From Tubulanus polymorphus (lineage: Eukaryota > Animalia > Nemertea), in the NCBI RefSeq assembly GCF_964204645.1, contig NC_134033.1, positions 15,694,655 to 15,758,654 on the forward strand: 64,000 bases of DNA. The letters run 5' to 3'. The stretch's first letter is position 1. The number at the start of each line of letters is the position of its first letter. Of this stretch, positions 9,025-57,700 are shown piece after piece. The position numbers and the translations under genes were made by a program. The notes below the pieces were generated by a model. It saw only the letters and a list, made by a program, of their open reading frames with translations. It was not told the origin of the DNA and ran no database searches.

Positions 9025-9972
9025 TTATTCGACAGAATTTCTACAGCGGATTTTCATACAGAAATATTCACGTATTTCTCGCCCCAGTAAAAGGTATATG
9101 TAGAAATTCACCACGAAATTACAAACCAGGAATTGTGTGAAAATCTCGAGTAGAAATTCTCTCTGTTCCGGTGAGATTGGTAAAAATACAATAATAGTCG
9201 TTGGAAGTGTGAATAGCGCAAATGCGAATGAAACTGTTACGAGCATTATTGTTATACGTTTTGATTTTGTAATTTTCTGATCGGACGAAACCATTTTAGA
9301 ACTTCTGAATAACTGAACTATTATAACAGAATTTGATGTTATGATCAAAGTTAACGGTATGATGTTAAAGTGGATGACAGATATGTAGAAAACTGTTATT
9401 TGGTCGACCAACCGGGCGAAACACCCGGAAATCTGGTCAGTAAAATGCAGCGACAAAGCAGGGCTGAGGTATAGAACTAGTAAATTTACTGCAGTGATTA
9501 TCAATATTGCAAATCTAGCGAATCTCGGTGTACATATCAAACGAGATGAGAACGGGAAAAGTACAATTGCAGCACGTTCTAAAGTTATGGCTACTATAAA
9601 CCACGCACTATTGTTGCTCACAAGTATCATTACAGATTCATAGATTTGACAACTAATCAGCGATTTCATGATGAATATAGGACCGTCTTTAACGTGGAAA
9701 AGAACAAACTGTAAAACAGGTATCAGCGTATAATTGACGCAATAAATAGAGTCACTAAGGGACAAAGCGATCAGATAGTTAGCGTAAGATAAACCGCGGA
9801 ATCTGCGACTTATCATTATCAGGAAAGTAGCCGAATTTCCAAACGTTCCTAACAGGAACACGATATGCAGAATGACCAATGCCACTGTACGGCGGATTCC
9901 AGACTTGTTCACCACCGACATGATGACGATATAACTGTAAGGTCGACTGATTTGCGTCTGAGTTGAATTCAT
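9025..9972 (-). CDS. Intronless rhodopsin-class (class A) GPCR, peptide-receptor-like orphan, 315 aa
   Basis: Seven hydrophobic segments with GN in TM1, LSLSD in TM2, ITLER (DRY-equivalent), FTLP in TM6 and NFVVNFYIY in TM7. Confidence 0.88.
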   Translation of the reverse strand: MNSTQTQISRPYSYIVIMSVVNKSGIRRTVALVILHIVFLLGTFGNSATFLIMISRRFRGLSYANYLIALSLSDSIYCVNYTLIPVLQFVLFHVKDGPIFIMKSLISCQIYESVMILVSNNSAWFIVAITLERAAIVLFPFSSRLICTPRFARFAILIITAVNLLVLYLSPALSLHFTDQISGCFARLVDQITVFYISVIHFNIIPLTLIITSNSVIIVQLFRSSKMVSSDQKITKSKRITIMLVTVSFAFALFTLPTTIIVFLPISPEQREFLLEIFTQFLVCNFVVNFYIYLLLGREIREYFCMKIRCRNSVE

Positions 9973-11452: not shown

Positions 11453-14400
11453 ATGGCCACTCGGGTCTCTCAGTCATCCGTCAGTAGTAACGCGGTTTAT
11501 ATCACTGAAGTAGACACGATTCTGAGAGCCATATCGAACAACGGTAAACGATGGTTGTACACGACTTATTTCGCGTTATGCGCGGCTCTCAGCTTCCCGT
11601 GCGCCTGGCACATGTTCGCGATCACTTTCGTCGGTAAGTGTCGGATGAAAAAATACTAAAAACTATTTGAAAATCTTATTTCATCAAAATCTAGATACTG
11701 ACTTTATAAGGATTTGTAAAGAAATCGTGGTAAATTCAATTGACGTGAGGAATTAACTTAATTTGTTTTAAGAAAATATCAAGCTTTTGCTACTAGAGCA
11801 CATAGTTGCTTCATCAGTTAAGTCAAGAACTCATTTGCCTGATAAAGCGGCAATGCACTAGTAGCGAAAGCTTGTATGCCTAGGAATATTACATCAGTAT
11901 TCGTGAACATGACTATCAGGATAAAGTCAAAACGTCGAATAAACTACTATAGCTAAAGGAAGGTAACCTTTTCGGACTTAAAGTCTTTCTATTCTAGTAT
12001 TGTGGGTATTTACCGTAGTGTCGTTTCAACGCGCACTCCGGGTGTTCCTCCATCAAGACCAAACTAATTGCAAATGATTTAAAGTTAAATCTAAATATCG
12101 AAGGTGTTGTCAGTTTTCGAGTTCACTTGGAATATTGCTATCAATAAGTCAATTTTACATTCATAAACGTAAGCACACAACTTTGTCCTCTAAAAGAGTC
12201 CAACGAACAACTCGGCAAACAAAAGGTCAACCCCAGTATTATCGTAAAGTTTGAAATATACTATCGTCGCAACAGGTGGACTGCCCGATGACTATCACTG
12301 TCGAGTGGGCGCCAATCAATCGATACCTCAGATTTATAAAGATGGTAAATGGACGAATGATAAATGTAGTATGTACAAGAATGAATCTAGTGGTGATAAT
12401 CAGACGATACCGTGTAATAATGGATTGGTTTATTATACCGATTATCAAAGCACCATCGTTACTGAGGTAATTAACATAATCATCTTATCGTAACTTTATT
12501 GAATTCCCCTACAGGCTGGTCATTATTTACCCCATGCTTTTGTGCTGATCAGACTAGTGTAAAATGTCTCCTCCATTAAAATAGTCACAGCAACAACATC
12601 TCTCACAATTTTTGATAAGTGTTTCTACAATTTTGCTTCTAACTTTCTGATTGCAGTGGGATCTGGTGTGTGACAGGGACTATTTACCTCAAATGGCACA
12701 GACTATTTTTGTCGTCGGTACTTTGATCGGAGCCGGAAGTCTGTCGCCGTTAGCCGATTGGTTGGGACGCAAAAAGGTGCACATCGGTTCACAGATAGCG
12801 ATGGCGATTGTGGGAATTATAACAATATTTTCTCCTAATTACGTCATGTTTGCCGTAATGCGAGTTATAACAGGTGCACTTCAACAGGTACGATCATCCG
12901 AACTGGTGCATACAGCTTCTGCTGCAAGAAAATCTAACTCACCTATTTCTTCTCATTTCCAGGGAGTGGTTCTATCCACTAGTGTCCTGTTGTTCGAATT
13001 GTTCCCGGCTGAAAAAAGGGCTCATTCGAACCTGAGTACTTGGTTATTTTGGTCACTCGGTATCATTTCTCTGGCCACGTTCGGTTACTTCGTACGGAAT
13101 TGGAGATATTTGCAGTTGCTGATTTCAATTCCTGCATTTCTGGACCTATTCGGTATCTGGTTCTTCCCGGAGTCCATTCCGTGGTTGATCGCGCACGGAG
13201 AAATCGACGAAGCTCAAAAGACAATCGACAAAGCCGTGAAAGGAGCGAAAATAAAAATCCCGATCCCCGGTTCGCTTCTAGAGTTGGAAGTACCGGAGAA
13301 ACCAAGTTTGAGAAAGTTGAGTCATGAATTGAAAAGGAAGTTGTCAGATTCGGTGCGGCACAGTTCAACAGAGGATCCACCGGTATTTAACAAAAAAACC
13401 TCCCTTGCTACAACTCAACTAATGCAGTGGAACCTCAATACATCGAACTCAATACGAAACCTTATAATATGCGCGTCAACCGATAGTTCGTTATATCCAA
13501 AATGAAATTAGTTAGATTTTCAAACTTGGGACGAAATTCTTGTTATACCCGATGAATCGCTATATCCGAGTTCGTTACGACGGGGTACCACTGTGGTAGT
13601 AGAATCTAGTTCCACATTTGAACTTAGTGGATCCAAAGTAAAATTAAACCCACACAACAGTGGAACTGGATCCAGAGTCAAATAAAACTCACACAACTGT
13701 GGAGCTGGATTCAGAGTCAAATTAAACCCGTACAACAGTGGAACTGGATCCAGAGTCAAATAAAAGTCACACAACTGTGGAGCTGGATTCAGAGTCAAAT
13801 TAAACCCGCACAACAGTGGAACTGGATCCACAGTCAAATAAACCTCACACAAACTGTGGAACTGGATTCAGAGTCAAATTAAGGAATTCGTTGATATTTT
13901 CAGGCACCGCAACCTGAGGAAAAACAAGAATCGTTGTGGGACGTGATGAAACATCCTCGTTTACGTTGGTATTCGTTGATCATGTGTCTAATGTGGTAAG
14001 TTCCTAAAACTATTCCCCCTAAAGACTTAATCTATTCGACTGAAAAACTGGCACTAGAATAATTCCGTCCATCTTTAAAGGTTCAACTCTTCGATGGCTT
14101 ATTACGGAATTTCACTGAGCGCCACGTCTTTGGTCGGCAACAGATATTTGAATTTCGGTCTGGTCGGAGTGATGGAAATTCCAAGTTACATATTCACCGT
14201 TACAACAGCACCGAGGTGAAATAATAAATCAACAAAAAACCTAGTCCTTTTCATTTCTTGTTTTTTTCATGCCGCGAAAATGTAATTTTTTCTTGTGTAG
14301 AATTGGTCGTCGTATTCCGTCATGTATTTCACAAGTAGGTGGTGGAATCGCACTTATTATTGTGCCCTTCATACCAAAAACACTCGGTAAAGTCTTTTAG

Positions 14401-28900: not shown

Positions 28901-31900
28901 AAATTCATATTCGAATTCGAGGAAAATGAAATTTCAATTCAACGTTTTACATTATTTTCTTGTCTGTAGAATTGGACGCCGTATCCCGTCATGTTTTGTC
29001 CAAGTAGGCGGCGGTGTAGCGCTGATTATCGTGGCATTCATACCAAAAACACTGGGTGAGTCTGATTATTTAAACTGATATAAGCTCAGTGCAGAAGTTA
29101 TTGAAAATATGTAAAAATTATCGTTCGAACAAAAATCATCGGATCCGGGTATTTTTAATAGGGGGAGGTCAAAAATCCGAAGTCTATTTTTTACACGAAC
29201 TTGGTACATGAACGTGAGCGCCGAGGACAAAGTCATGCAGGAGGATTTGGGGAGGCCCCTAAGAAAGTTTTGAAAAGACAGATTTTCTGAGCATCTAGGA
29301 GTGATTCCAGTACAAAATGACTGGTAATAATCTCGCGCTGTATGTTTCTTTAAGCCAAGTTGTGAAAATGTTTTCCTGACAAAGAATAGGGGCCCGGGCC
29401 ACTTAGGTCCGACTTGGCTCCGCCACTGTGACTGTTTCCGTAAAAAATGGAATTTACATATATATATATCTCGAAAATGCCTGTCAGAATAGATAATTTA
29501 AGATATATATCATCAATTGTGGGGATGGTTCATTGATTCGATAAGGTTATTATTATCATTAGTAATTTGAAAAAGGAATCACGATGTGCTGTGTTGCTTT
29601 CTCCTATTTAAAATGCGTTAGTTTTTGTATATAGTTACTGCTTGTGTTCATTGTCAGTCACTTCGAACAGTCGGTTGTATTTTGAAAAAAAGTGTATCCA
29701 GCGTGGTAACCTTATATATCCGGTTTTCAAATTTGAGGTCAGTAACAGTGAAGATCCGTTTTAAAAAGTGAAATTAGACACGACCCCCTGTCGGTAGACG
29801 GAAATTGTGTTTAGGTTAGAATAGAGAAAATTGGACCACAACTTCCAAGCGAAATAAGTCATACGCGTTGCTAGATACCTAAATAAATTCTAACGTCAAA
29901 ACAGGTAGCACCGTCGTGTAGGTTAACCGATTTTCAGAAGCAAGTTCACATCGGCTCGGCTAATATCCGACCGTTATCGAAATCCATTAGTATCCAGTTG
30001 TAGTAGGTATTGACGAAACGGCCTATATCCACCTTTCATAGGTGGCGTTACTGGAGAACCATAAGCGTTCCCAGTCAGACGATACTATGCAAGCGTCTAT
30101 TCGTTCGAACGAAAATGATTCACCGTGAGGTGCTGCCGCTATGCCTGTCGTTAGCGGACTTTTCATGCACTAATATGAGTGGACTCTGGCAATCTATGTA
30201 CGGGGTCGATTGCCAGACTCTACTCACATTAGTGCATGGAAAATCCGCTATCGATGAGCATAGCGGCAGCACCTCACGGTGCAGTATAAACAAAGTTATA
30301 TCGTGCTGAGAGAAATTCAGTAGTTCTAAAAAGTCTTTTTGTTAGGATTTTTATCTAGAAGATCCTCGTGTATAATTTACAAGTGTGCAGCAAAACTATC
30401 TAGTTTTTGTATAATTGGTTTTGACTTGCTGGTGATCAGACAAGTATTTCGTTCGTTTGTTGTGTTAAGTCGTAATTATCGCCGTTGTTCGACTTTTTGC
30501 CCTTTCGACTAGAATATAGTTAGAATATGTTCAGGTCGTTTGTCCTGAAATCCAACGGATGGAAATGTTTGGTAGCACAGTTACTTTTTAAAAACTAAAT
30601 ACTTTGCCTAAATTTGCACATTTCAACGCGTAGAAAACACGAAGTTCCATCTCGCATTTAATCATTATATATTTAAAAAACATCGTCGATGTGTTAAACT
30701 TATGATAACTCAAATATCCGTCAGTTGGTCGTTTTACAATGTCGTCTGCTCAGAATAGCACTCTCGTCGTAACGTCATGCCGGGAAACGTTACTGCTACC
30801 GATGAAATCGATTTTCGTCGAAGCGTTTTACGTTTCTACGATTTTAAACAGCGCGTTAGCGTTGGTCGGAATCACTTCGAACATTCTCACAATCGTCACG
30901 ATCGAACGATACATTAAACGCAAATCGTATTACGTCTGTAAATTCGTAGCTTGTTTCGATTTATCGTTTCTCGTTTCGTTCGCGTTTTTGTACCCGATTC
31001 GGATTTTATACGTTTACGCTGTTCTGGCCGACGTCATGTTTCGTTTATACGGACGCAGATTCGCTTATTGGATTTCGTACACGTTCAGACTGGGCGGTTG
31101 GTTTACGTACGTATTTTCCTTCGCGTTTATATGGTTTCAAACCTCGCGTAACTGGTCGATCGTTTTGCTCAGCGTCGACCGATTGATTGTGATTTCGTTT
31201 CCGTTGCGAGCCGCGAAATTCTGGACGAAAAACAAACAACTTTTGATCGTGATTTTGATCGCTATTTCATGCGCGTTTATTAACTGGAATTTTATAATAC
31301 CGAGATCATTCCCGGCTCTTTATCGCTGGCCTTGTCTTCGATTGAACATTCTCGTTTATACTATGTATGGCGGTTATGACGTATTTAAACATACAAAGTT
31401 GTATGACTATTACGAAGATTATATCTACATATTCATAACATCAATATTACCTTCTGTATTTTTAATAAATGTTAATTTTCTATTAATGTTTGTTTTATAT
31501 CGAGCGACCCCAGCTCGACGATCTCTTCGTCGAAGCGATTCAGAAACGAATGTCGTCGATCTCCGCGCTCTCAAAAATGTCATCGCCCTCGTCGTATTTT
31601 TTCTAATCTGTGAAATCCCGGCGACGATGCCGAGATTTTTATCATTAATTGGGTACGTAATATCCAATTATCGAATGCTGGTTGCAATAAACAGAATCGC
31701 TCTCACTTCAACGGTGTTCAATTCAGTCGGTAATTTTTTCATTCTAATTTCCGCTGATGATAGATTCAGAAACTCAGCGCGACGCGCGGCGCTACCCGCC
31801 TCATCGTCTTTTTATAGGGTTGAAACGAATTAGAGAATATAAGTTTCTGCACTGAATAAATCTACCGAAGCTCATACGACTATCTACGACCTTTTCCCCA

Positions 31901-32927
31901 ACTTTCGTTGTTATTTCTTGACACTTAATTCCACGACTTTCGTACATAAAGAACAGAAAACGTGAAATTATCAAAACACGGCTCCTCAACTCTTCTCAAA
32001 ACATTCGATGATCTTACAATATCAAACTTAAGAATATTTTCATTTACAATAGAGGTTCACTGATCGGGGCTTCGCGGGTGAACTTACTCATCTGTCTTTT
32101 TTATACCGGTAGCTGATGGGACGAGTTTGGCTCCTCTGATTGTTACTGTTACTATGGTCGGCATGTTTTTCGAGGCATCGGCTTTTTCACTGGCATTTCT
32201 TTACGGACAAGAGATTTATCCGACCAGCACCAGGTAAATGTCTCCGAACTAAATAGAAACTTAGTACTTGTATTTGGATCGGTGAATGCAGCGCTTTATT
32301 GAGACAATGTTTATGAATTTATAGGAATAGTGGGTTAGGTTTGTCTTCAATGTGGGCGAGGGCTGGAGGAATGTTGGCTCCGTTTGCGGGTTATATGGTA
32401 TGTAATATTGAAATACAAGCCGTTATCACGGGTGTAATTTGATAGAACGATAACCACACTCAAACGTGGTGAACGGATAATAAGATAAAATCCCACTATT
32501 TACAGATTAAAAGAATTTAAAAACAAGAATTTTTTTATTAAATCTAAAATATTTAAAAGACACGACGTTTCGATCTCACCCTAGAGATCATCGTCAGGTG
32601 ACTTAAATTCTTTTAATCTGTAAATAGTGGGATTTTATCTTATTGTGTAATTTGAGTTCGATTCGTTTATAAGGGTTTTCATTGCTGTTGTAGATGACAA
32701 AGATCTACTGGTTTCCGGGAGTATTTCTAGGCTCTGTATCTATAATCATCGGTCTACTGGTATTATACCTTCCTGAACCGCTTGGACGTCCAATACCGCA
32801 GAAAATCGCCGACATGGATTCCTGGACGCGTCAACGATATCGACCGCCAACAGACGACAACATGGCCGACGAGCAACTTCCGGCGTTACACGAACAGAAC
32901 GAGGACGATTTAATGGAAATAAAATAG
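25934..32927 (+). CDS. SLC22-like transporter copy 6 (exon 2 26560-26750; enlarged intron 7 29056-32112 hosting a GPCR gene)
   Basis: Exons 1-7 lie before 29055; exons 8-10 start at ~32113, ~32325 and 32694, all in frame. Confidence 0.9.
30121..30281. mobile_element. ~160-bp fully palindromic MITE (termini CCGTGAGGTGCTGCCGCTATGC), copy 1
   Basis: The arms are reverse complements over ~70 bp; other copies lie at 33369 and 61824. Confidence 0.85.
30739..31833 (+). CDS. Intronless rhodopsin-class GPCR (FMRFamide/peptide-receptor-like orphan), 364 aa, nested same-strand in SLC22 copy 6 intron 7
   Basis: 7TM pattern: GITSNILT, ACFD, LSVDR, FFLICEIP, NSVGNFFI. Confidence 0.88.
   Translation: MSSAQNSTLVVTSCRETLLLPMKSIFVEAFYVSTILNSALALVGITSNILTIVTIERYIKRKSYYVCKFVACFDLSFLVSFAFLYPIRILYVYAVLADVMFRLYGRRFAYWISYTFRLGGWFTYVFSFAFIWFQTSRNWSIVLLSVDRLIVISFPLRAAKFWTKNKQLLIVILIAISCAFINWNFIIPRSFPALYRWPCLRLNILVYTMYGGYDVFKHTKLYDYYEDYIYIFITSILPSVFLINVNFLLMFVLYRATPARRSLRRSDSETNVVDLRALKNVIALVVFFLICEIPATMPRFLSLIGYVISNYRMLVAINRIALTSTVFNSVGNFFILISADDRFRNSARRAALPASSSFYRVETN
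32558..32603 (-). ncRNA. Minimal Penelope-type hammerhead ribozyme motif inside a 42-bp inverted repeat (32479-32644)
   Basis: Minus strand reads agtcac CTGACGA T GATCTC-tagggt-GAGATC GAAA CG TC gtgtct: both core boxes, stem II and stem I pairing. Confidence 0.65.
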
Positions 32928-33368
32928 AGAAAATCTAACGAAATTTGATAACAGTTTTTTTAAATAATTCTAGATTTTTTAATTGAATACAAATGTATAT
33001 CAAAAACGGATTGTTTCTACTAAAATCGTATCAATATTATACCTATATACATTTATAACATGTATTAATAATAAGCGATCTTTTAAAGTTATACCGCGAC
33101 TTATGAAGTTCTTTTCTATGGCGATTTTAAAACCGATCACGAATTGAGAACGGGTATTTAAATACCAATTTAGTACTTACCACGGTTTGCAGATTACTTC
33201 GTTTCCGCGAAACAAATATATCTATTTTTCACCGTGTAACCTCCGGGGTTCCATTTTTTTCTAGCTGATTACGTGGCCATGAAATCATCTTTTCGGGTCC
33301 ACGTTATCAACGAAAACGAAGAGTTTCGTGGGCCATGGAGTATTTTATTCGTTCGAACGAAAATGATT

Positions 33369-33529: not shown

Positions 33530-34574
33530 CAGCATAAACAAAGTTATATCGTGTTGAAATTCAGTAGTTCTAAAAAGTCTTTTTGTTAGGATTTTTATCT
33601 AGAAGATCCTCGTGTATAATTTACATGTGTGCAGCAAAACTATCTAGTTTTTGTATAATTGGTTTGGACTTGCTGGTGATCAGACAAATATTTCGTTCGT
33701 TTGTTGTGTTAAGTCCGTTACTTTCCGCCGTTGTTCCGGACTAGACTTCCTTTCACCCGGCGGTGCAGATAACCAAATGTCCCGGCCGGACTCTGCTTAC
33801 GGTGGAGCTTATTTTTTTCGTGGTGTTAATTCGTGTGACGACAACCAATCGTCGCCCCGACTGACCTAACAACCCCCTCCCCCCCCCCCATAAGCACTTG
33901 CTCAGTGCCTCGTCATAGAAAACCGCCTTGCGCAGTAGACAGGAGCCACCTTCTCGGTTATCTGAGTAAGTCGTCTATAGTCGAACTAAACGAAACCGAA
34001 TGTCCGTAAGTCGGAACTATATTCCGGAAATAGTTCGGAAATCAAGCGCATTCGGTTATTAGTTTCGACCACTAGTCGACTAGATACGAAAACCGAATTT
34101 GGCCCAGATTGCTGTTACATCATCTCACTGCATCTTCTCCTCATTAATAGTATTTCCGTTTAGATATAAATGATTTCCGGTTTACTTCCGGTAAGGTTAT
34201 AGAAATGCGTGGTAGGATAAGATAAGTCAAGCTTATCGTTGAACTATCGGCAGGATTCATTGTTTTCGATTGCCAGAGTCGGCAATTCCCGGTGATCCCA
34301 AAATCCGTGAGCGCCTCTGTAAATATTCTACGCTCGAGAAGAAAATCAACACTTACCGAACGACTCTAGAAACAGCTTTGAATTATTCAGAAGGAAATCA
34401 GAAATTTTATTTTGAATGGAATATTCTGGTGACACAGGTGACGCAAAATAATCAGCGCCGGGATTCACAATTGACAAAACATTAAAACATTCGATATTAA
34501 ACCGATCGAAAATGAACGAGCGGATTTAAGCTATTATAAAGGTGCATTTTCTTAGTCTTTTTAGTCTCCCAGCG

Positions 34575-35005
34575 CTAATTGGGGTCATTTTTGGCTCCAG
34601 CTCCAGCTCCGGCTCCGGCTCCGGCTCCGGCTCCAGCTTCATCTCCAGCTCCAGCCCCAGCATTGTTACCACCGTTGTCATCGTCATCATCATCAGCTGA
34701 AAACAAAGAAACGAAATATTTTCCAATCCAAATTATCGAGGACAACTCTCGAGATGGACACTATTATCCTCATTGTTATCATTCCCTTTAAATTTACTTT
34801 ATTATTTATGATTTCTTTACCTTAACTTTTATTCAACAAGTTAAGGCTGCTAACGTCACCCGATCCGTATTAGTAGTCCCTTTTGATTTTGGAGATTTTG
34901 AAAAATGTTTAATGAAACAGGTATGAACTTACCGGCTTCTGCATGCGACGTGAAGTGTAACGACAGTAGTAGGAACACGGCTCCGAGAATCAGGAAATAA
35001 CGCAT
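34575..35005 (-). CDS. Small secreted Gly/Ala-rich peptide A (64 aa; coding exons 35005-34933 and 34696-34575): MRYFLILGAVFLLLSLHFTSHAEA-ADDDDDDNGGNNAGAGAGDE(AG)7AKNDPN
   Basis: ATG directly follows a CAG acceptor. A 24-aa signal peptide ends in A-E-A, the phase-1 GT-AG intron joins in frame, and a paralog with the same structure lies at 53387-54156. Confidence 0.75.
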
Positions 35006-36228
35006 CTGCAAATTCAAGAAAAAAATAAACAGAATATTCTTTAATCTATACAAAGTCAAAATTGTTGCTTTTTTCGATTTCAAGCGGAAAGAGTTTACGA
35101 ACTTTTATGATACTATTTCGTCGACTTCAAATAACCTGTGAAATGATAAGAAATATAATTGTACATACTAAAATAGGGGAATGTATACAGTTGAAATGAA
35201 ATATTTAAACTATACCAACTGAAACTTCAGCGTCTCGTACCTGTGAACTATTCTGCGGTTTGAACCTACTTCTAATCCCGACCAATTCTTAAACCAAACT
35301 GACGCACGTCACCTGCTTCTTACTAATTGGACGAACAGATGCCGGCAATTATATATATGAATATGTATGATTAAAACATCTCGTTAATGGAAATTCTCAA
35401 GGGCGGCGCCTTAAAATCGCGAACCATTATCGTTTTCCGATAGCAATTATAATCATAACGTTTGCCCCGATTTAGGTTGTTTTTATTTGCTGGAAAGAAT
35501 CGAAAACGAAACGAATAAATGATTGATTTACAATTAAACTGAAATATTCCATCGTAGCTGAGATAATGGTTTTTCACCAGCATCGAAAGAGTTCAAAGCT
35601 TTTGAAGTCAATACATGTACAATCCGCGCCTGAGGTTCAATATATGGGGTAGAAAAAGCTAAGAACTTTCAATTTATGTCTGGTTCCAAGGGGAGGTAGC
35701 AGAATCCGCACCTAGAACGACGTTAATGATACATAAGAAAAACATTAACTAATTCCAACTTTTGACTAAAGCTCGGCCGCAAAAAACGAAATCATTTTTC
35801 TGACCTCCTCAAAGTAATGGAACTGTACATTACTTTCAATATAATAAACACATTTTCCTCTCAAACCTCGAACTCATTTTGCCGGTCCCACAGTGTGGCG
35901 AGGTTTAATGTTTACGCAGCGCGAAACCTCGATCAGTTGAATAAATACAAAAGAAAATTGAAGTCAAACGTATCATTTTTTTCTGATAAATGGTGTATAT
36001 TTAATTAATTAATATAACACTGTTATTAACACATAGTTTATAATGATTTATTTCTATTTACATTCTATATCATCGTCATAATTATAATCATCTTTACAAC
36101 AACATCATTTTATCTTAATCCATTTATAATAATATTTTACCATTCACGGTGTACACGGTTATTTCGGCGGCATGAAATTTGCCCGACATTATTTTCTAAA
36201 TGATAACTAAAAACGAAGCTCCATCGCC

Positions 36229-37782: not shown

Positions 37783-38006
37783 ATATCTCTATTCAGTATT
37801 CCTATATCTAAAGTGTATCAGAAATAGTACAGAAGACTTCGCTCGAGTCAGATCTGTTGGGACCGTAAAATGTGCCCGACTCAAGTGATGCCCAATTTGG
37901 ATGTTATGTATTTCCAAATGTAGTATCACAAAAAACATTTTTTTTTAAAACATCCGAGTTGAACGGTTATCTCTGAGTTAATAGGATCCGACTCGGGCGG
38001 AGTCTA

Positions 38007-38119
38007 CTGGATCCATTTCCACAGTTGTGAGTTAGAGTTAACTCTGAGTTAAAATTAGTTCATTTTCAATGTTTTAACTCAGAGTCAAATCTTAACTCAC
38101 GACTGTGGAACTGGGCCCT
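38007..38119. mobile_element. MITE family GGATCCAGTTCCACAGTTGTGAGTTA...TAACTCAC.ACTGTGGAACTGGGCCC; also at 28310-28495 and 44674-44780
   Basis: Palindromic structure and multiple dispersed copies. Confidence 0.75.
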
Positions 38120-38340
38120 GTAGTTTACTTGAAGATGAACTAGAAATTATTCTGATTTTGAGAGAGCTTGTATTTTGATATTTTTCGGTGAAGTCGAGAG
38201 CTCTTAAAAAGTAGAAACTATTGTCAAATAGTCGTCGTAGTCCGGTGTCGACCGGACGCTCGACCTCGCAAATCTCTTCGAAATAAAAGTTGATAATAAC
38301 TATATGTGACATTTACACACGCATTTTACAACTGCGCCTA

Positions 38341-41539: not shown

Positions 41540-44500
41540 CTAGTGTAACACGCTGGATACATCCCATAACTGGAAATAGATCGAAACAAAATCTTAAATA
41601 TCGGTTCAAATAAGTGGCACCTACAGTAGTTGTAGAGCATGTAGAGCATGTAGAGCATATGTAATGGACTTATGGCAACATCAATCTGCTGTCCAGACCC
41701 TGTGCATCCTTTTAGAAATAAGATGACTGCCTCATGAATCCCCTGATGATATTATCAAATTGATTACCGAAACCTAGTCTCTCAAATGCGAGGAAATTGC
41801 ATTGAAATGCATGGATATTTCTTTGTGTTCCAGTCAAATTCCACCCCTGGATTTGCCTCTGAGGCTGAGGAGGTCGGGTGCAGGATTGCTCCGGACTTCA
41901 GGACGAGAGGATAAGCTCGAGGGCATGCTCCAGACTGCCGGTTGAGGGAATTGGTGGAGCTGTAGGGTGAAAGGGTGGCTCCAGGCTACATGCCGAGGAT
42001 TAGCACCCGGCTCCAGGGGATTGGCTTACAGGCTGAAGGGGTGGCTCCAGGATGCATGCTGAGAGGATAAGTGCCACGATCCAGGCCGCAGGCTCAATGG
42101 GTGGCTCCAGGCTGCAGATTAATACCGGTACCTGACACTCACCTTAATAACTTTATCTTTGCCGACTGTTAATAGAATTTTACGAATTTCGTCCAAATCC
42201 ATGTGGACAATACTGTGTCGCGAGTCGTGGAATGTCGCCATGGGAACGCGGTCCTCGTCGGTAACCGTTTGACTGCATTCCGCGCAGACCCGCACGTCGA
42301 ATTCGTACCCCATTATCGGTATCGACGTGCGGTTACCGCTGCATTTGTCGCAGACGGCTTTTCCACATTTACGGCAATGGTGCTAAAAGAGGAGAAAATG
42401 AATAATTCGCATTAAGCTCGCGTCGAGGATGAATTTCTGGTTATGGTATTACGTCACGCGGGAACTACAAACGAAGACAGTTTTAACTATAACCATCGGT
42501 GATACAATATTCCACGTTTTAATGATAGAAAATCCCACATTCATATAGCAGAAGATTAAGTGTGAAAAGTTTCCTTTCCGGTGTAGATTTATTCGACTAT
42601 ATCCTGATAGTCATCTTCAGGAATACTGTATACATTGAGCTAGTGTAGTTTATTCAACGTTTCGACTTTATCCTGATAGTCATCTTCAGAAATAATGAGT
42701 GAAACAAAATATCTATATATGATATAAATATCTAGATATGTCTCTAAGAACTAAGAGACAAATTAAGTAAGCTCAACCAAGAATATTAAGTATTCCTAAG
42801 CATTCCGAAGGCAGGGAGCGAGAAATGTGGAAGATCGTCTGCCAAAGGTACTAAGTTTGGTATAATATAAGCTAATTGTCCCATTTAGATCTAAGTTGAT
42901 GAGAAGGTGAATATTTTGGGAGAAGTTTGCAGAGATAATCATCTCTGTAAACAAGATATTTATAACTACGTGTCACGATACAAACTGCGTCTGGCGCGAA
43001 AATTACATCGACAACCGATTCGTCGAAAGCGCCACCTACCTGTCTCGTTCCTATCGTTTTTTCTTCCCACATTTTCTTTAAATTCCAGAAAAATGGCGTG
43101 CCGCATTTTTGACAGTGGTCGCCTTCGGCCCACTCGGGAGTCTGAAATTAAAAATGACCTTTCACATCAATCCTCTGATTTGAGAATCAATTGAGATATT
43201 GAAGAGTAGGGTTCAATTGAACAGTAAGGAGTGAAGTCCTTAATCAAAGTCAGAAATAGACAAGAGTCTCGAATTATGGTCGTTCATCTAAGGTAGGTTT
43301 CAATAGTAAGTATTCCGGTGTTTAGGAATACAAATTCCACTTATTACAAACTCTCTATCGGCAGCTTCTATCAGGTTTACAGATTACAAACTCTCTACCG
43401 GCCGCTTCTATCAGATTTACAGATTACAAACTCTCTATCGGCAGCTTCTATCAGGTTTACAGATTACTAACTCTCTACCGGCCGCTTCTATCAGGTTTAC
43501 GGATTACAAACTCTCTACCGGCCGCTTCTATCAGGTTTACAGATTACAAACTCTCTACCGGCCGCTTCTATCAGGTTTACAGATTACAAACTCTCTATCG
43601 GCAGCTTCTATCAGGATTACAGATTACAAACTCTCTACCGGCCGCTTCTATCGGGTTTACAGATTACAAACTCTCTACCGGCCGCTTCTATCGGGTTTAC
43701 AGATTACAAACTCTCTACCGGCAGCTTCTATCAGGTTTACAGATTACAAACTCTCTACCGGGGCTGCTTCTATCAGGTTTACAGATTACAAACTCTCTAT
43801 CGACCGCTTCTATCAGGTTTACAGATTACAAACTCTCTACCGGCCGCTTCTATCAGGTTTACAGATTACAAACTCTCTACCGGGGCTGCTTCTATCAGGT
43901 TTACAGATTACAAACTCTCTACCGGGGCTGCTTCTATCAGGTTTACAGATTACAAACTCTCTACCGGCCGCTTCTATCAGGTTTACAGATTACAAACTCT
44001 CTACCGGCAGCTTTTATCAGGTTGACAGATTACGTTATTCCGGAATAGTTAGAGCATATTCTGGTCTAACCGAACACGTCAGAAGAGAATTCCGAATTCA
44101 TTAGAGACCAATCGAAACCTATCAAAACCTTGACAGTGTAACTCAGGTTCACTGACCTCTTGGCGTTTGATGTCCATTGTCCAGATAACTAATGCATTAT
44201 CATCACCGGCTGATAGTAACTGTTTTGTACTCGCGGCATAAATCACAGATTGTACTTTATCACTGAAAATGAATACCGATTTTAGATTTTAAGGGATTTA
44301 TAACTGTTTTGAGATCAGGCGCAGATCCAAGCGGTCTACTGGGCCTTGTACGCGATCCTCAAATTTTTAAATCTATTGATTTAATGAATGAACTAAATGA
44401 ACTAAACATGTTGTTAACCCTTTCAGTGCGTCTGCACCGCAGTGCGGTGTACGAATCAGTGATGGATTTTGCTAGTACACCGCACTGCGGTGTATTGATT

Positions 44501-47500
44501 TAATTTACTTACTGATGACCTTGTAATTCGAAGGCCGTCCCCTGTTGACCCCCGATGTCCCAGACGATTATCGTCTGGTCGAAACTTCCGGAAAATAGTA
44601 AACTGCGTTCCACGTCCCACGACAAACACCTTATACTACCTGCAATTATATAATACAGTAATTTGTGAAATCTGGGATCCAGTTCTACAGTTGCTACTTG
44701 AGAGTAAGCCCTTAACTCAGAATCAAGTCCTACAGTTGTGAGTTAGAATTAACTCTGAACTGGGACCCAGTTCCACAGTATGGTGTGATTGAGTTATAGT
44801 AACACCTGTTGAACTGACTGGGGTTGTGCAAGTACCTCCCTGCCCGTCTCCCACATGATATACTATTCATTTACCCGAGTGTCCCTTGAGAGTTGTGATG
44901 ACCTCCAGACGATTTTCGAGTAGTTTAATAACGGTGACTTGACCGGAATAATCACCGACGAACGCGTAACGAGACTGAGAGTCAAATCTGTAGAGTTATC
45001 ATCAAGGATTCATAACAGACATTCCATACCGTAGACCGCTCGTAACAACAGAAAATCTGCAGTAATTCAACACTTGCCGGTTGAACGGTCATGCTGGGTC
45101 GAGAAGATCATCAGTTACAATGGTTCGATACACGAAAGACGGTCTCTCATTTGGCTGATATTTTTGATGTAGTAATGAAGAATTCTGATGATGATATGTC
45201 TCGGGAGGAACGACGATAACTATCATCACTCCTCCCAAGACATATTATCATGATGACGATGGCTGGCCCGACGATCTGGACGACTAAGCCGGTCCGTGAC
45301 CAGAGGGGTCAGACACAGAGGGTGACCTCCCAAAGTTGGCCAACTCGATATCATTTGAAAGCTTGCGAAAAGAGCTTTCAGAAAATGTATACGTTTATGA
45401 CATTAGCCCTCATATCTACTGAGGTATTAAGTTTTCCCTCGTCTGGTCCAAAATCGTTTTCAGGCTGAAAGGTTAAGCGAGTTTGGCTTGACCAAGTTAA
45501 ACATCTACCCCGAGGGATAACTCATGATATCCAGCCCATTAAAACAGGTTTGGGTTGAGGACCTATCCCTACAAATAACTTTTGATATCCAGTCCATAAA
45601 GTAGGATCAGTGTATCTCAACTATTATCAAGTAAAGGATACTGTAGACAAGTACACCAAGCAGACGTCTGGAACCCACCGAGACGACGACCCGTCTCCGA
45701 ACAATGCCACTGGAAATATTTATCTCGACCGGTGCTAAGCAACCATTCACACGTCAACGCGTAGATTATCCCCGTCACTCGACTTTGATGCGCTGAAAAG
45801 TAGTAGTAAATGTTTGATGATTGAATTAGTTATTCTCAAGTGTCGAGTTGGAGATTAAATTTCATACAAATCAAATGCGAAAACAGGTAGCACTTTGTAG
45901 GTTAACTGATATTCTATTAGCTCAATTAGTCGGTCTTATTACTTGCGGGTTTTTTCTTCAAGTACACCTACTACCTGTTTTCTCGTTAGACCAGCATATT
46001 TCCAACAGAATTATGGCGATGAATTATGATTATTTGATTATTTTCAGGATATCTTACCGAGATACGTTCGACTGTGCGTCATACGATTAAAATCATCGGC
46101 TAAAGAGAATTCCTACAAAACGAAGAAATTCAAATTTTTTAAAACGATAGTAAACAGTTAACTGGTCTGCTATAGTTCAGTAGACTGCGCGGAGCTCGCA
46201 GAAACTCCCTCAAACAGGGCGCCGCCACTTTCTGTCCATTTACAAATGCCCTGAATTGTCCACGTGATTACACAAAATTCCCCAGAGAAATTTCTAGGTT
46301 TAAATGTTACGATTCATTTATTTTTCATCGAATCACAAACTGATAAAGTAACATGTGGTCAATACCGTTATATTATGAGAACTCCCCTAGTTCTCGAGGT
46401 TTTAGGTTAAAATTTTTCGAATTCCCTGGGGTCGGTTTTATAGACTGGTATTACCTTTAACCCGTGGGTTAACTAAAAGTGTTTTCAACCAAGTTAGCCC
46501 ACGGGTTAAAGGTAATACTGATCTATAAACCCAGCCCTGAGTTTTCCTTGATTTTTCTGATTCCCCGATATTTCTAGGTCAGTGGCCATCCTGCCGAAGA
46601 TACGCTAATTTCGGGGTACTTGGACCAGGGATGGGCCATCATCATCACGATGAATTGGAGTAAAATAATTTGTTATATATTTTCAGGCGATACACGCGTT
46701 AAAATTCAAGGCAATTGAATCAGATGTATTTTTAGTTCACTTGTATATAGCTACCTGAATGGTTCCGTTGTCTAAACCAATGAACAGTCTTCTTGTTTCC
46801 GGTGTGTAATGCAGAGATGTTGGCGCAACTGAAAAAAAAACACTTGAAAATCAGTCTAAAATTCTAATAACCTTCTGGAGCGAGTTGCATAGTCGTGACT
46901 TAAAGTCAGAAAGTAGTCTTAAATCTTAAGACTGGTCTTAAGTTGTTAGATTGGCTGAAGAACTAAGATAGTCTTAGACTGGTCTTAAGTCTAAGTCATG
47001 ACTATGGAATCAGCTCCTGGGGCCAGTTGCACAGTCATGACTTAAGTCCAAAGGTGGTCTTAAATCTTAAGAATGGTCTTAAGTTGTTAGATTGGCTATA
47101 GAACTAATTTGGTCTTAAACTGGTCTTCAATCTAAGTCATGACTTTGGAACCGGCCCCTGGAGCCAGTTGCATAGTCGTGACTTAAGTCTAAAAGTAGTC
47201 TTAAATCTTGAGACTGGTCGTAAGTTGTTAGATTACCTATAGAACTATGGGCTTAGACTGGTCTTAAGTCTACGCCATGACTGTGCAACCGGCCCCGGGA
47301 GACCTGTTGATCTACAGTTATTGAGTAGTCACAGTGACTCCGAGTTCCACAGAACTGAAGAGTCCTAACGATAGGTCTCCTCAATAGTAGTCACTGGGAC
47401 TACTCCAAACTATTGAACATAAACACAGAACAGAGCTGCTGATATACTACAAACATAATTGACTATTTTTGATTGCCCGGGTAAGAGTCGCGAGACTTGA

Positions 47501-52069: not shown

Positions 52070-52365
52070 TCGTTCTCAATTCACGATTGCTCGCAGTAAA
52101 TCACAGTATTATTTCAACAGATCGCTTATTATTGATACATGTCATAAATGTAGATAGATTGGTACGATTTTAGTAGAGACAATCCGTGTTTAATATACAT
52201 TTGTAATCAATTTGAAAATCTAGAAAACATGTAGAATTATAAAAAAAAACTATTATAAAATTTTGTTAGATTTTCTCTATTTTTGTCCTCGTTCTGTTTT
52301 TGTATAACGCCGGAAGTTACTCGTCGGCCATGTTGTCATCTGTTGGCGGTCGGTGTCGTTGACGT
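52070..52365 (-). pseudogene. Inverted fragment of SLC22 copy 6 last exon and 3' UTR (counterpart of ~32830-33152)
   Basis: The reverse complement matches CGTCAACGA..CGACCGCCAACAGA.GACAACATGGCCGACGAG.AACTTCCGGCGTTA and the downstream UTR. Confidence 0.85.
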
Positions 52366-52409
52366 ACACCCGAGAAGCTCCGATCAGTAAACCCTGGCAT
52401 AAATAGGAA

Positions 52410-52700
52410 ATCTTAATAGTTTGATATAATAAGATCATCAAATACATTTAGAAGATTTGAGCAGCCGTATTTTAGGTATAATGATATTTTCACGTTTTCT
52501 GGTTTTTATGTATGGAATTCATTAATTTCATTGCAGAAACCCTGTAAATATTCTCTAATTAGTGTCAACCCTATAAAATGGCTTTATTCAATGAGGCGGG
52601 TAGCGCCGCGCGTCGCGCTGAACTTCTGAATCTATCATCAGCGGAAATTAGAATGAAAAAATTACCGACTGAATTGAACACCGTTGAAGTGAGAGCGATT
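52410..52700 (-). pseudogene. Inverted fragment of the nested GPCR TM7/C-terminus and 3' UTR (counterpart of ~31695-32035)
   Basis: 52590-52700 is almost identical to the reverse complement of 31695-31803. Confidence 0.88.
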
Positions 52701-53386
52701 GTACAATGGTGACTTCAGGTTAACTCCATTTGTTAATTACGCTAGTCGAACGGCTCGTAGTCCGGACGTAGAGTGACACCGATGCTGGACTCTATAGAGA
52801 GGAGATGGTCTGAAACCCTGAAAAGCGCCAAGTTCAAATGAACCAATAGGCAAACGATCAACATGATACATTCACGTCGATGCATCGCGACATCAGCCAC
52901 AATTGTTTATTTCAGTTTGATTGTGAATTTTCATGTTGCGGTCGATTTTCAACAACCTTTTCCAACAAATAAAAACAAGCTAATTGGAGCGAACGGTTAT
53001 AATTGCTATCGAAAATTGATAACGTCTGCGATAATTGGGCGCCGTCCTCGAAAATTTGGAAAATTTCCATTAATTAATGAAATATTTTGATTATATAATT
53101 GCTGGTACCAGCGGTCAGGAGCGTCAGTTTGGTTTACGATTTGGCTGGAATTAGAAGTAGGTTCATACCGCAGAATAAGGTACGTGACGCTGAAGTTTCA
53201 GTTGGTATAGTTTGGTCTTTTTATTCTAACTATACACAATCCTGTGTTTAGTATTCGATTTATATTTGATTATTTCACAGGTTTTTGAAGTTGACGAAAA
53301 AGTATTTTAAAGTTCGAAATCTACAAAAAAAATACAATTTATTTCTTGCAACAAATTCTAAGATATTCGTTTTTCTCAATTTTCAG

Positions 53387-54156
53387 ATGCGTAATATTCT
53401 GATCCTCGGAACGATGTTGCTACTGCTGACGTTACAACTGACGTCACAGGCAGAAGCCGGTAAGTTCAAACGGAGCCCCGGACCTGAAATAGTGAAAAAA
53501 TACATCTCATTTCGTTCGAACGAAATGTTTTTTCGTGGGAACGAAAACTTTTCGTTCGAATGAAAAACTTTTCGTTCCCAAGGAAAGCATTTCGTTTGAG
53601 CGAAAAGATACGATATGAATTGATATGATATACTATCGTTCCCACGAAAAAGATATTCACTTTTCACCACGTCACCTTCGGGACTCCGGAAGTTCAAACC
53701 TATTTCACTAAAACTTCATTTTTGAAAATCACCAAAATCGAAAAGGACGCGGATCGGATGGCCTTGACCTGAGCGGCCTTTTAGTTTGTCGCTAAGGTTA
53801 AAGATAAAGCAGCCGTAAAAAGCATAAGTAAAGTGAGGGAAACTGTTATACCGGTATCGACTATTACTTCACCCACTAGTCAATCCTTCATGAATATTTT
53901 CCATGAGGATTTGTCTCACTGGAGGCAATTCAGAGTCCTTCATCTGATATTGATACTTACATATCGTTGTCCAATAGAATCTGTAATTTGAATTTGGAAA
54001 TATTTCGTTTCTTTCTTTTCAGTTGTTCAGCATCCTACCACCACCAGCAGTAGCAGCGGAGGTGGCGGAGCTGGAGCTGGGGCTGGGGCTGGAGCAGGAG
54101 CTGGGGCTGGAGTTGGAGCTGGGGCTAATGCAGAAGCTGACAATGACCCCAATTAG
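53387..54156 (+). CDS. Small secreted Gly/Ala-rich peptide B (68 aa; coding exons 53387-53459 and 54023-54156): MRNILILGTMLLLLTLQLTSQAEA-VVQHPTTTSSSSGGG(GA)7GVGAGANAEADNDPN
   Basis: Same 73-nt signal-peptide exon, intron phase and NDPN-stop ending as peptide A. Confidence 0.75.
53470..53690. mobile_element. ~220-bp non-autonomous DNA element in the intron of peptide gene B
   Basis: Imperfect TIRs (CGGAGCCCCG / CGGGACTCCG), flanking direct repeat AAGTTCAAAC and internal TTTCGTTC repeats. The element is absent at the equivalent site of paralog A. Confidence 0.7.
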
Positions 54157-54715
54157 CGCTTGGAATACTGTGTCGTATCGCTATGTTGGGTAGGTTATTT
54201 CAATTGACTCCATCTCTTATAGCAAACACCAGAACACGAACAGTTCTTGCTTGATTTTGACGAGGACTTTGGAACTGTATTAAGGGTTTTGTTACACAGT
54301 TGTTAGGGGTTAAGTTCGACTGAAAATCAAACTCAGAACTGTTGAAATTGGATTGTAATATGACGATCATTATGTTTATAACTAATCAAAAGGATGTTTT
54401 TATACATAGTGAATAAAATTACGAATACAAATTTGGACTCATAAAACAGATAACTGAATTATAGCGACGGCTTTTACATATAATGCAGATATGGATGTTT
54501 GTTCTGTTTCAGATGTCAACCCGGTAGCGGAAAAATACAAATCAACAAAAGATATGAAGACAATTCGCCTTTACAATTGCTTAAATCCGATTATACATAT
54601 TTGATTGGTTTATTATTGAATATTTTCTCTCGCCTCTATCTCCAGAACATTTCAATCGAATAAAGTTTCTGATTTTCATCCAGTGCTTTAGTTACTTCGG
54701 TATCCGAATTCCGAA

Positions 54716-57700
54716 TCATTTGATTGGTTGTCGTTTTCTGCGTTTATTTCGAGCTCGTATGGATTTCATATCGATTGTTAGAATAGTATAAAGAAGTGGG
54801 TTCAGAGTTGAGTTTATCGGTAAGAAAAGAACGGCCAGCCAAGCGGCGACCTGGTTCGGTATCTCGACCAAAAATACGGCGCACAACTGAACGATTATTA
54901 ACGGTAACCAGCAAAATAAATTACACAAATTGATGACTAAACTGCGTCGAGCTAGAACGAGTTCTGTAGGATCAGCTCTACCCGAACCGGACCTGCTTCC
55001 GGATACATACTTGTACATCTGCGCGTACGACATCATTATCAGAGTGAGAATGATCGCGTTTAATACAGCGAATATAGCGAACGAATATTGCCAACCATTG
55101 ACATCTATAGATATTAAATTCATAGGTAAACAGATACCTGTGCTACCGTAAAAATTATCACCGAAATAAGACGACCGAGACAGCGGCAGAAAGGCGATTA
55201 AACTCAGAAATATCCAGCATAAACAAGACAGAATCATAATAATATTTGAGGATAAAACTGGGTTACCGGAAAATGGATCGACGATATTCGAATATCTGAA
55301 ACGCGTGAGGAGAAAGAGAAATGTTAAAGAACCTTCACAAGATATCGTCACCACAATTCCGGCAACGCTGCATAATGAACTGCGAGTCCAAGTTTCAGAA
55401 TTCAGAAAATAAACACCTTTATAAACGTGATCAGTTGCAGCGATCAGAAACAGATAAACAGACATCAGGAAATCACAAAGCGCGATATTAATGATGAGGA
55501 TATCCGACGATTTATTTTGCGTTTCTGATGAAACTCGAATCGACCTAAAACGAAATAGAATAACGATGATATTGGAAACGAAAGTAAAGCAAGCGATGAT
55601 CCAGATAACTGCTGTGAGGACAGTGTTCTCAATGAGGTCTGAACACGATGAGAATTGATCAGGATCCGGGAGACACCGGTCAATATTCGGTGCCATACAA
55701 CAGAATTTATACGCGTCCGAAGCGAGAAAATATAAAGACGTCAAATTATCGAAGATATTATTTTCCACAGAAATTATCCGAGAGTTGTTGGTGATATCTA
55801 GAACTCCCAGTGAACTCAACCCAGTAAACGCGTATCTGGATATTGATCTGATAGCGTTACTGCTGATATTCAAATATTTCAGCGCTGGTAAACCTCGGAA
55901 TACGTTACGAGTAAGAGCCGATATAGAGAGACCGTGCAGATCCATAACCGGAAGTGACGTCAAACCGTTGAAGCTTCCGTCGTTCAAATATCTCAGCGGA
56001 TTTCCAGCGAGTAAAAGTTGTTTTAAACTGTTTAAACCAGTGAATATATCAGCATGTAGTGATACTAGGTGATTATAGGACAGATCTAATATATTTAGAT
56101 TGCGTAGATTAGAAAACGCGTTGGAGACAATATCAGATAAATCATTACGGGAAATATTGAGTATAAAAAGGTATAAAAATGGAGAAAATGTCGATTCATT
56201 GAATCTAACTCGGTTATTCGATAAAATCAGAACGCGAGTCGACGCCGCAAAAATTTTAGAAATATCTGATAATAAAGCGTTTTCACAATCAATCAAACGA
56301 CCTTGACATTTACAGTAGTTAGGACACGTGACGTCGCAGAAAGCCTCGTCATCCGAGTTGTGTTTACAATTTACGACGCCATCGCAAACTTCCGACTGAG
56401 GAATACATCTGTGTTCATCACCGCATTTCAACATTCCTGGACACGAAAACGTTTCACAGTTGAATTCATCTTCTGAATGAGGACAATCTGATCGACCATC
56501 GCACACGTGTCTAATCGGTATACAGTAAGACGATGGACATTTCACTGTACCAGCTGCACATTCAAACTCGTTACAATTCAGTAAATGTTCGAGTCTTCTA
56601 CAAACAGGAAAACCTGACGACATTCTTTCTAAAATACATCTATCTCTTCTCGCGTAACAATGAGGAGAATTGAATGAACATCTTTGTTTATCCGATTCTG
56701 TACAGAGTGAAGTGAAATTGGTCGTGCAGTAGTTCTCTTTAGTGCAGTGAATTTGTGGTTTAATCGTTATGTCGGTTGTTACTATTTCATCTTCTTCGAG
56801 GTCCCCGCCACAATCTACAACACCATCCCGGAACAACAGAGAACTGATACATTCGCCATTTACACACAAAAACCCGTTACATTCGTCGGAAGAGCAGACG
56901 ATTTCATCGGATTTATCTTTACAATCAACCAGTCCATCACATCGTTTATATTTACCCACACATTGTCCGTTTTTACACTTAAACTGTTCAGAGGAACATA
57001 AAGTATGATAGCACGAGTTCTCATCTGATCCGTCAGCGCAATCTCGTACAAAATCACATAAATTACTCACTGATATAACTTCTCCATCTGAACACTGGAA
57101 CTGACTGTGTAAGTTTGAACCCGAACAATCGAGTTCATCTTCACCGTGTTGACAGTCGTTTCTAGTATCACATACGCGATGGTCGCTGATACATCTTTGA
57201 TCGTTACATTGAAACTGCCACGATTTACATCCGCTTATAGAAGCTAACTCTTCACCAGTTACATTATAGGAACATAGCACGGAATGAACTACATTTGTCC
57301 CATTATCGAAGGCAGTCACTGACCATTTCACTGTTTTAATATACGTTATCCAATCTCTAATTACAACTGGTTTTATTGCCACAATTCTTCCGCTTGTATG
57401 ATTAGTCAGTATAGCGCCATATTGATGCTGATAGTGGAAAACATTTATCAAATTCTGAATATCAATATTAGATGTTATTATACCTATGTCTCCACCGATT
57501 GTAAGACAGATTTCTTTGGCTGTCTGGATTGTTAGACTTTTAGTATGGAGCGTTTTCCAGGCTGTAAGTATCTGATAGCAATGCGCTTCTATATGAATCC
57601 ATCCTCTCAGACACGTGGAGTTAAATCGTTTAAAGTTGTTGCGTGTTATTTCAGTTGTATCGTTTTGTGAAGATGGATTAAAGTCTTTTCTTTCTGTTTC

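Follow-up and report, generated by a model that had tools for sequence, protein, structure and literature searches.

Two predicted secreted-peptide genes with a short Gly-Ala core in the nemertean Tubulanus polymorphus

Introduction

Silk fibroins carry crystalline (Gly-Ala)n blocks, such as GAGAGS in the heavy chain of Bombyx mori and (GA)n in spider minor ampullate silk. Small Gly-rich secreted defence peptides, including the nematode nlp/cnc caenacins and the Gly-rich antimicrobial peptides of arthropods, are produced from two-exon genes, and Asp-rich acidic secreted peptides and proteins are represented by the ovine surfactant-associated anionic peptides and by molluscan Aspein and Asprich. 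In vitro, beta-sheet aggregates that bind thioflavin form from (GA)6 but not from (GA)3 (PMC5077081). (GA)10 also aggregates, and conjugates of a hydrophilic polymer with (GA)10 block aggregation and disperse existing aggregates (PMC13267777). Here, we analysed a stretch of 64,000 nucleotides (nt) from the nemertean Tubulanus polymorphus (assembly GCF_964204645.1, contig NC_134033.1, positions 15,694,655 to 15,758,654 of the forward strand; "the window," to which all positions below refer) and describe two small, putatively spliced genes, copy A and copy B, that probably encode secreted peptides with a short, uninterrupted Gly-Ala core.

Results

Two tiny exons with a common layout

Reading both strands and translating the exons placed copy A on the minus strand and copy B on the plus strand (Table 1). 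The two copies have the same layout, in which an ATG-led exon encoding a 24-residue signal peptide is followed by a phase-1 intron running from GTAAGT to TTTTCAG and by an exon encoding a head, a (Gly-Ala)n core, and NDPN before the stop codon. In copy A, the ATG at 35005 is the first base of its exon, directly behind a TTTGCAG acceptor, and positions 35005-34934 translate as MRYFLILGAVFLLLSLHFTSHAEA, after which a G at 34933 precedes the GTAAGT donor. This predicted signal peptide has a single Arg, at position 2, and a hydrophobic core of 14 residues, and it ends in Ala-Glu-Ala (-3 to -1). The 236-nt intron ends in TTTTCAG, and exon 2 from 34696 completes the split codon G/CT (Ala) and continues as DDDDDDNGGNNAGAGAGDE(AG)7AKNDPN-stop to 34575. 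Behind the split codon, exon 2 of copy A thus runs from six Asp and a short Asn/Gly stretch through (AG)3, Asp-Glu, and (AG)7 to Ala, Lys, Asn-Asp-Pro-Asn, and TAG.

Copy B matches copy A in exon 1 length, intron phase, and splice motifs. Its first exon (53387-53458) translates as MRNILILGTMLLLLTLQLTSQAEA and is followed by a G at 53459 and GTAAGT. The split codon, G/TT, encodes Val, and the remainder of exon 2, which starts at 54023 and ends at 54156, translates as VQHPTTTSSSSGGGG(AG)7VGAGANAEADNDPN-stop. In this exon, a Val-Val-Gln-His-Pro-Thr3-Ser4-Gly4 head precedes (AG)7, whose continuation is slightly degenerate and leads to Asn-Asp-Pro-Asn-TAG. The predicted mature peptide of copy A contains eight Asp, one Glu, and one Lys, and that of copy B contains two Asp, one Glu, and one His; neither contains Tyr, Trp, or Phe. 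Without a break, Gly and Ala alternate over at most 15 residues in copy A and 14 in copy B.

An earlier note on this DNA had proposed that two tiny exons are spliced to give a signal peptide and a 40-residue mature peptide in copy A, and that the region at 53387-54156 is its paralogue. Our coordinates and translations agree with the first proposal to the base. The second is upheld by the equal length of the signal exons, the common intron phase, the (GA)n core, the terminal NDPN-stop, the upstream similarity, and a TATA box within the alignment.

Differences between the copies follow the reading frame

Copies A and B are old duplicates with a divergence of 29% across aligned non-coding sequence, and the differences between them could be used as a test for translation. 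The 36 coding differences fall 8/5/23 at codon positions 1/2/3 (chi-square p=0.0004; binomial p=0.0002), whereas non-coding differences fall 72/71/65 and have no position bias (p=0.81). Within the signal exon, the 15 differences are distributed 6/0/9, with a chance of about 0.002 for zero changes at position 2, and every replacement in the h-region of the signal peptide exchanges one hydrophobic residue for another. When we simulated 15 random substitutions in this exon, only 3% of the mutants retained the signal features, defined as an open frame, an equally hydrophobic core without charge or Pro, and small residues at -3 and -1.

The last 29 codons of exon 2 behave similarly, with 21 differences that fall 2/5/14 at the three codon positions and of which 14 are silent. 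All three frames of the GCTGGA array are open. Array variants occur at position 3 of the GCTGGA unit in copy A (GCT/GCC) and at position 6 in copy B (GGA/GGG). Only the Gly-Ala frame makes these two sites third codon positions, whereas reading the array as Leu-Glu would make them second positions. The frame of exon 2 that silent variation indicates is also the frame supplied by the phase-1 donor of exon 1 through the canonical acceptor. Indels follow the same division. The one coding indel is 12 nt long and in frame, whereas the approximately 22 non-coding indels are mostly not multiples of three and include one of 4 nt just inside the intron. Both copies also retain the stop codon and the two splice sites. 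By comparison, a control array of similar unit on a different contig is a perfectly homogeneous (CACCAG)13 microsatellite and lacks a signal exon. Haplotype single-nucleotide polymorphisms cluster at 34802-34884 (intron), at 35132-35199 (upstream intron), and in the 3' flank; none are listed in the exons, a distribution that is not significant.

Together, these patterns indicate that the reading frames of both exons, and that of the Gly-Ala core in particular, are under purifying selection. The mixed Gly and Ala codons had been read previously as speaking against a plain microsatellite, and both the codon-position test and the indel test back this reading.

Upstream exons, 3' regions, and an insertion in the copy B intron

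Pairwise alignment and sliding identity showed that the similarity between the copies begins about 550 base pairs (bp) upstream of the ATG. Several conserved promoter blocks of 15-25 nt and a TATATAA box (35355-35349 in A; 53092-53098 in B) lie upstream of both copies, and the common blocks together with a TATA box at the right distance count in favour of the gene model. A block that is 83-90% identical between the copies, that ends in AG/GTACG, and that in copy B starts about 30 bp past the TATA box is likely a non-coding first exon. Because the putative 5' exons of both copies contain no ATG, the ATG of the signal peptide would be the first in the mRNA. Two other identities for the conserved 5' block were rejected. 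Folding z-scores of +0.5 (copy A block) and +0.8 and an empty Rfam result spoke against an RNA element, and the presence of only two copies ruled out a spliced-leader RNA gene.

Similarity is lost right after the stop codon owing to an insertion of about 377 nt in the 3' untranslated region (UTR) of copy B. Homology then resumes, with 34484-34561 of A corresponding to 54547-54626 of B, and AATAAA signals lie beyond this segment in both copies.

The intron of copy B contains a palindromic element of 228-229 bp (approximately 53466-53694) that resembles a miniature inverted-repeat transposable element (MITE), is flanked by a direct duplication of about 10 bp, and has at least 68 matches genome-wide on many contigs. 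This MITE-like element starts a few bases past the donor of copy B and left GTAAGT intact, which we also counted in favour of the gene model. Searches of Rfam at both loci returned nothing except sub-threshold microRNA-like matches on the MITE hairpin. Hairpin matches akin to this element also occur at 38001-38126 and 46426-46540 of the window.

Table 1. Features of copies A and B, with positions in the window
Feature	Position	Strand	Details
Coding exon 1, copy A	34933-35005	-	ATG, 24-residue predicted signal peptide ending in AEA, and first base of the split codon (phase 1)
Intron, copy A	34697-34932	-	GTAAGT to TTTTCAG; 4-nt indel relative to B just inside
Coding exon 2, copy A	34575-34696	-	Poly-Asp head, Gly-Ala core, KNDPN, TAG stop
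Promoter region, copy A	35340-35560	-	Blocks 53-80% identical to B; TATATAA; similarity stops upstream of about 35560
Putative non-coding first exon, copy A	35241-35305	-	GTACG donor at 35240; 83-90% identity to B 53121-53179
Possible second non-coding mini-exon, copy A	35114-35135	-	After CACAG and before GTAT; AG/GT-bordered block conserved in both copies; purely inferred
3' UTR, copy A	34406-34574	-	To AATAAA at 34411-34406
Coding exon 1, copy B	53387-53459	+	Predicted signal peptide; phase 1
Intron, copy B	53460-54022	+	Holds the palindromic MITE-like insertion
Coding exon 2, copy B	54023-54156	+	Thr/Ser-rich head, Gly4, Gly-Ala core, ADNDPN, TAG stop
Promoter region, copy B	52890-53120	+	TATATAA at 53092-53098
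Putative non-coding first exon, copy B	53121-53179	+	GTACG donor at 53180
3' UTR, copy B	54157-54664	+	Insertion of about 377 nt relative to A; AATAAA at 54412 and 54659

Copy number and relatives

Searches of the 268-Mb genome by DNA similarity, by motif pattern, and with the peptides of both exons revealed no copies beyond A and B, and one plain microsatellite. The "family" of peptides proposed in the earlier note therefore shrinks to two genes in this genome, and the notion of an "interchangeable head," which rests on these same two genes, was overstated. The description of the peptides as undescribed held as far as our searches reach, with neither a relative nor a paper turning up. Searching Pfam with each exon of each copy gave no match at E<=10 apart from one noise match, and a search of the ESM Atlas returned no relative. 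We likewise found nothing similar in nemertean neuropeptide supplements, in papers on nemertean mucus proteomes, or in the literature on silk-like and Gly-Ala repeats.

Surroundings of the two genes

The region between 36200 and 37888 on the plus strand, about 0.9 kb from the promoter of copy A and on the opposite strand to it, is a 42-bp array of 37 copies with 96% DNA identity. It forms one open reading frame (ORF) of repeated YRQANRFTRLGKRR units that starts with MITKNEAPSPSGN and has no signal peptide. Since the units are near-identical, the array is young, and its open frame alone is no proof of a neuropeptide gene. A very high-copy repeat occupies 33880-34170, about 240 bp past the AATAAA of copy A; in run X1, its summed contig depth is about 44,000 compared with about 27 in the flanks, and many loose ends fall at 33954 and 34105. 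A further tandem array, of 40-bp units in 17 copies with 93% identity, lies between the two gene copies at 43343-44033.

Near each Gly-Ala gene, 31695-33103 and 52097-52700 have an inverted similarity of 76-89% that is not collinear with the gene duplication, which suggests either a more complex rearrangement or a separate repeat. The similarity at 31695-33103 takes in the 3' end of an intronless rhodopsin-type seven-transmembrane (7TM) ORF at 30739-31833 (plus strand), and another such ORF lies at 9025-9972 (minus strand). Positions 1-33000 form a tandem array with units of about 5 kb (matching points near 700, 5517, 12262, 16645, 21526, and 26553; 76-98% identity), which includes ORF fragments resembling MFS/sugar transporters, such as that at 12651-13505. 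On the minus strand, 54716-57955 is a single long ORF that combines four LDLa domains, an LRR region, and a rhodopsin-type 7TM receptor and resembles the LGR/relaxin receptors. The 3' 630 bp of this ORF recur at 63372-64000 with 98% identity, so a second near-identical receptor copy probably follows beyond the end of the window. The gene content, which also includes a CUB protein, is that of an animal. Two degenerate patterns built on a published T. polymorphus corazonin precursor had no match in the genome.

Discussion

A and B are probably secreted-peptide genes that are lineage-restricted as far as our searches reach, and they would have arisen by an old inverted duplication. Each gene most likely consists of a TATA promoter, one or two short non-coding exons, an exon that starts at the ATG and encodes only the signal peptide, a phase-1 intron, and a terminal exon. 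We are fairly confident that this gene model is right, and we infer secretion of both peptides from rule-based signal-peptide features. Co-translational cleavage after Ala-Glu-Ala would release a peptide of 40 residues from A (net charge of about -8) and one of 44 residues from B (about -3). Each peptide would have three parts. The polar head changes fast, being poly-Asp in A and Thr/Ser-rich, with possible O-glycosylation, in B; the Gly-Ala core, of seven unbroken repeats, appears to be held by purifying selection; and the NDPN end is conserved. The core may self-associate as a beta-sheet, as (GA)6 and (GA)10 do in vitro, while the charged or glycosylated head may set solubility or binding, so that the peptides would be small components of an extracellular secretion or matrix. 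A silk-like role, for which the earlier note named tube, mucus, cocoon, or cuticle, is physically plausible because the unbroken (AG)7 core exceeds the aggregating length of (GA)6 (PMC5077081), and the polymer-(GA)10 conjugates provide a model of how such a head, whether poly-Asp or glycosylated Thr/Ser, might act (PMC13267777).

We put this explanation as a whole, with secreted peptide genes, a self-associating core, and tuning by the head, forward tentatively. Considered separately and by analogy, a self-assembling or material-like role is possible but doubtful. A bolder form of the explanation would make the peptides the smallest natural silk-like building blocks known, genetically encoded, secreted 40-residue amphiphiles that self-assemble through a (Gly-Ala)7 beta-sheet core and whose swappable head, made of Ca2+-binding poly-Asp or of glycosylated Thr/Ser, controls the time and place at which a worm secretion sets; we consider this form unlikely.

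Several results weigh against the proposed explanation. A word-index search of 5.8 billion protein clusters with exon 2 of copy B produced only chance low-complexity matches, and a full HMMER search of 1.84 billion representative proteins with a profile of A and B produced only four chance Gly-Ala matches. A bulk structural protein would be highly expressed and would be expected in transcriptome-derived sets, so its absence from them counts against such a role, and no homologue, domain, or tissue information points to a function. The absence of relatives is also weak evidence of true lineage restriction because ORFs of such small size and low complexity are difficult to detect and poorly covered by annotation. 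Three sequencing runs from one study contain the locus, with a depth that is even over introns and flanks, as in DNA, and with no splice joints. A fourth run, possibly of RNA, contains nothing of the locus, nor of the very high-copy repeat at 33880-34170. In addition, total coding divergence is 21-24%, little below the 29% of non-coding sequence, and repeat slippage copies variants, so that differences within the array are not fully independent events.

An alternative that accepts the genes and their secretion assigns the peptides a non-structural role, be it in defence (as anionic peptides), in signalling (as a pheromone, for example), in the binding of Ca2+ or a metal, or as soluble additives, with Gly-Ala acting as a flexible spacer. 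The signal exon, phase-1 intron, short mature-peptide exon, and duplicated copies, with a hypervariable region beside a conserved signal, form an architecture that is typical of defence and toxin peptide genes. The wholly different heads of A and B fit such a role as well, and the transcriptome-derived protein sets speak against a bulk material. However, the peptides are without cationic or aromatic residues, except for the single Lys in A and the single His in B, and without Cys, and they lack dibasic processing and amidation sites. Selection on the Gly-Ala core itself, where 14 out of the 21 differences are silent, would also be unexpected for a mere spacer. On balance, we regard a non-structural role as rather unlikely.

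The locus might instead not be a functional protein-coding gene but a duplicated non-coding or untranscribed segment, in which a hexanucleotide microsatellite lies downstream of a signal-like ORF and the similarity reflects common descent only. The DNA-like runs without splice joints, the lack of a relative in the protein collections searched, the three open frames of the GCTGGA array, and an overall exon identity near that of the flanks are consistent with this possibility, as is the non-coding nature of the best-conserved block. Against it stand a third-position bias that is present in both exons and absent from the flanks, a signal exon free of second-position changes, and a sole coding indel that is in frame. 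The conserved stop codon and splice sites, and the agreement of two independently inferred frames across the intron, argue in the same direction and make a non-coding locus unlikely. A different or larger gene might be considered, with more coding exons or with splice variants that reach the neighbouring 42-bp-array ORF or another site, given that the upstream exon structure is putative and that this ORF, itself without a signal peptide, lies so near the promoter of copy A. We regard such a gene as very improbable. The array ORF is transcribed divergently, from the opposite strand, both copies keep the same stop codon, behind which homologous 3' UTR blocks and AATAAA signals lie, the putative 5' exons lack an ATG, and no such array lies beside copy B.

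Expression and secretion of the proposed peptides would mean that a minimal Gly-Ala peptide of one block serves an animal in place of a giant fibroin, and the peptides would then interest biomaterials research as a template from nature for designing short peptides that self-assemble and whose heads can be tuned. The genes would also bear on micro-genes restricted to particular taxa, which both standard annotation and tryptic proteomics miss. If the genes are unexpressed, the finding is a curiosity. The locus also provides a clean example in which comparison of paralogues alone, through codon-position and indel patterns, can validate a spliced micro-ORF without RNA data.

Comparison with known systems

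The two peptides lie outside the families of fibroins, Gly-rich antimicrobial peptides, neuropeptide precursors, and acidic matrix proteins, since for each of these a defining feature that we tested is absent from A and B. Neuropeptide and prohormone precursors have mono- or dibasic cleavage sites beside their peptides, often with a C-terminal Gly for amidation. This signature is missing here, as paired Lys or Arg residues are absent, a lone Lys occurs in A and none in B, and both peptides end in Asn before the stop. Like Gly-rich antimicrobial peptides, A and B combine a signal peptide with a short Gly-rich mature peptide in a compact gene, and they have undergone local duplication and have a fast-evolving mature region. 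Unlike those peptides, which are cationic and rich in Tyr, Trp, and His, A is strongly anionic and B is near-neutral, neither has aromatic residues, and there is no sequence similarity. As in Asp-rich acidic peptides, a run of six Asp stands right after the signal peptide of copy A; this run is confined to A, with Thr and Ser in its place in B, and no homology connects either copy with these peptides. We know of no mineralised structure that would need the Asp run. Mucin-type secreted glycopeptides have a Pro/Thr/Ser-rich O-glycosylation domain; copy B has a short HPTTTSSSS stretch whose O-glycosylation is putative, and copy A has no such stretch.

Like silk fibroins, the predicted secreted products contain alternating Gly-Ala runs, for which the same physical basis of beta-sheet stacking is expected. 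Fibroins, however, are thousands of residues long, have conserved non-repetitive terminal domains, and are made in a dedicated gland, whereas mature A and B have 40 and 44 residues with one core of 15-22 residues in place of a repetitive one of hundreds to thousands of residues built from Gly-Ala(-Ser) or poly-Ala blocks. No terminal domain of a fibroin or spidroin was found in Pfam at E<=10, where the one match was noise, and there is no sequence homology. In length, the core would suffice for a beta-sheet, with (AG)7 compared with a threshold between (GA)3 and (GA)6 (PMC5077081). The seven unbroken repeats also fall within the aggregating range of C9orf72 poly-GA and synthetic (GA)6 and (GA)10 (PMC5077081, PMC13267777), and a hydrophilic head joined to a GA core recalls the polymer-(GA)10 conjugates (PMC13267777). 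Those molecules are pathological products of repeat-associated non-AUG translation or laboratory products, intracellular and unsecreted, whereas A and B are ATG-initiated, have a predicted signal peptide, and appear to be under purifying selection. At best, the two peptides may act like a single crystalline block of a fibroin or like poly-GA peptides.
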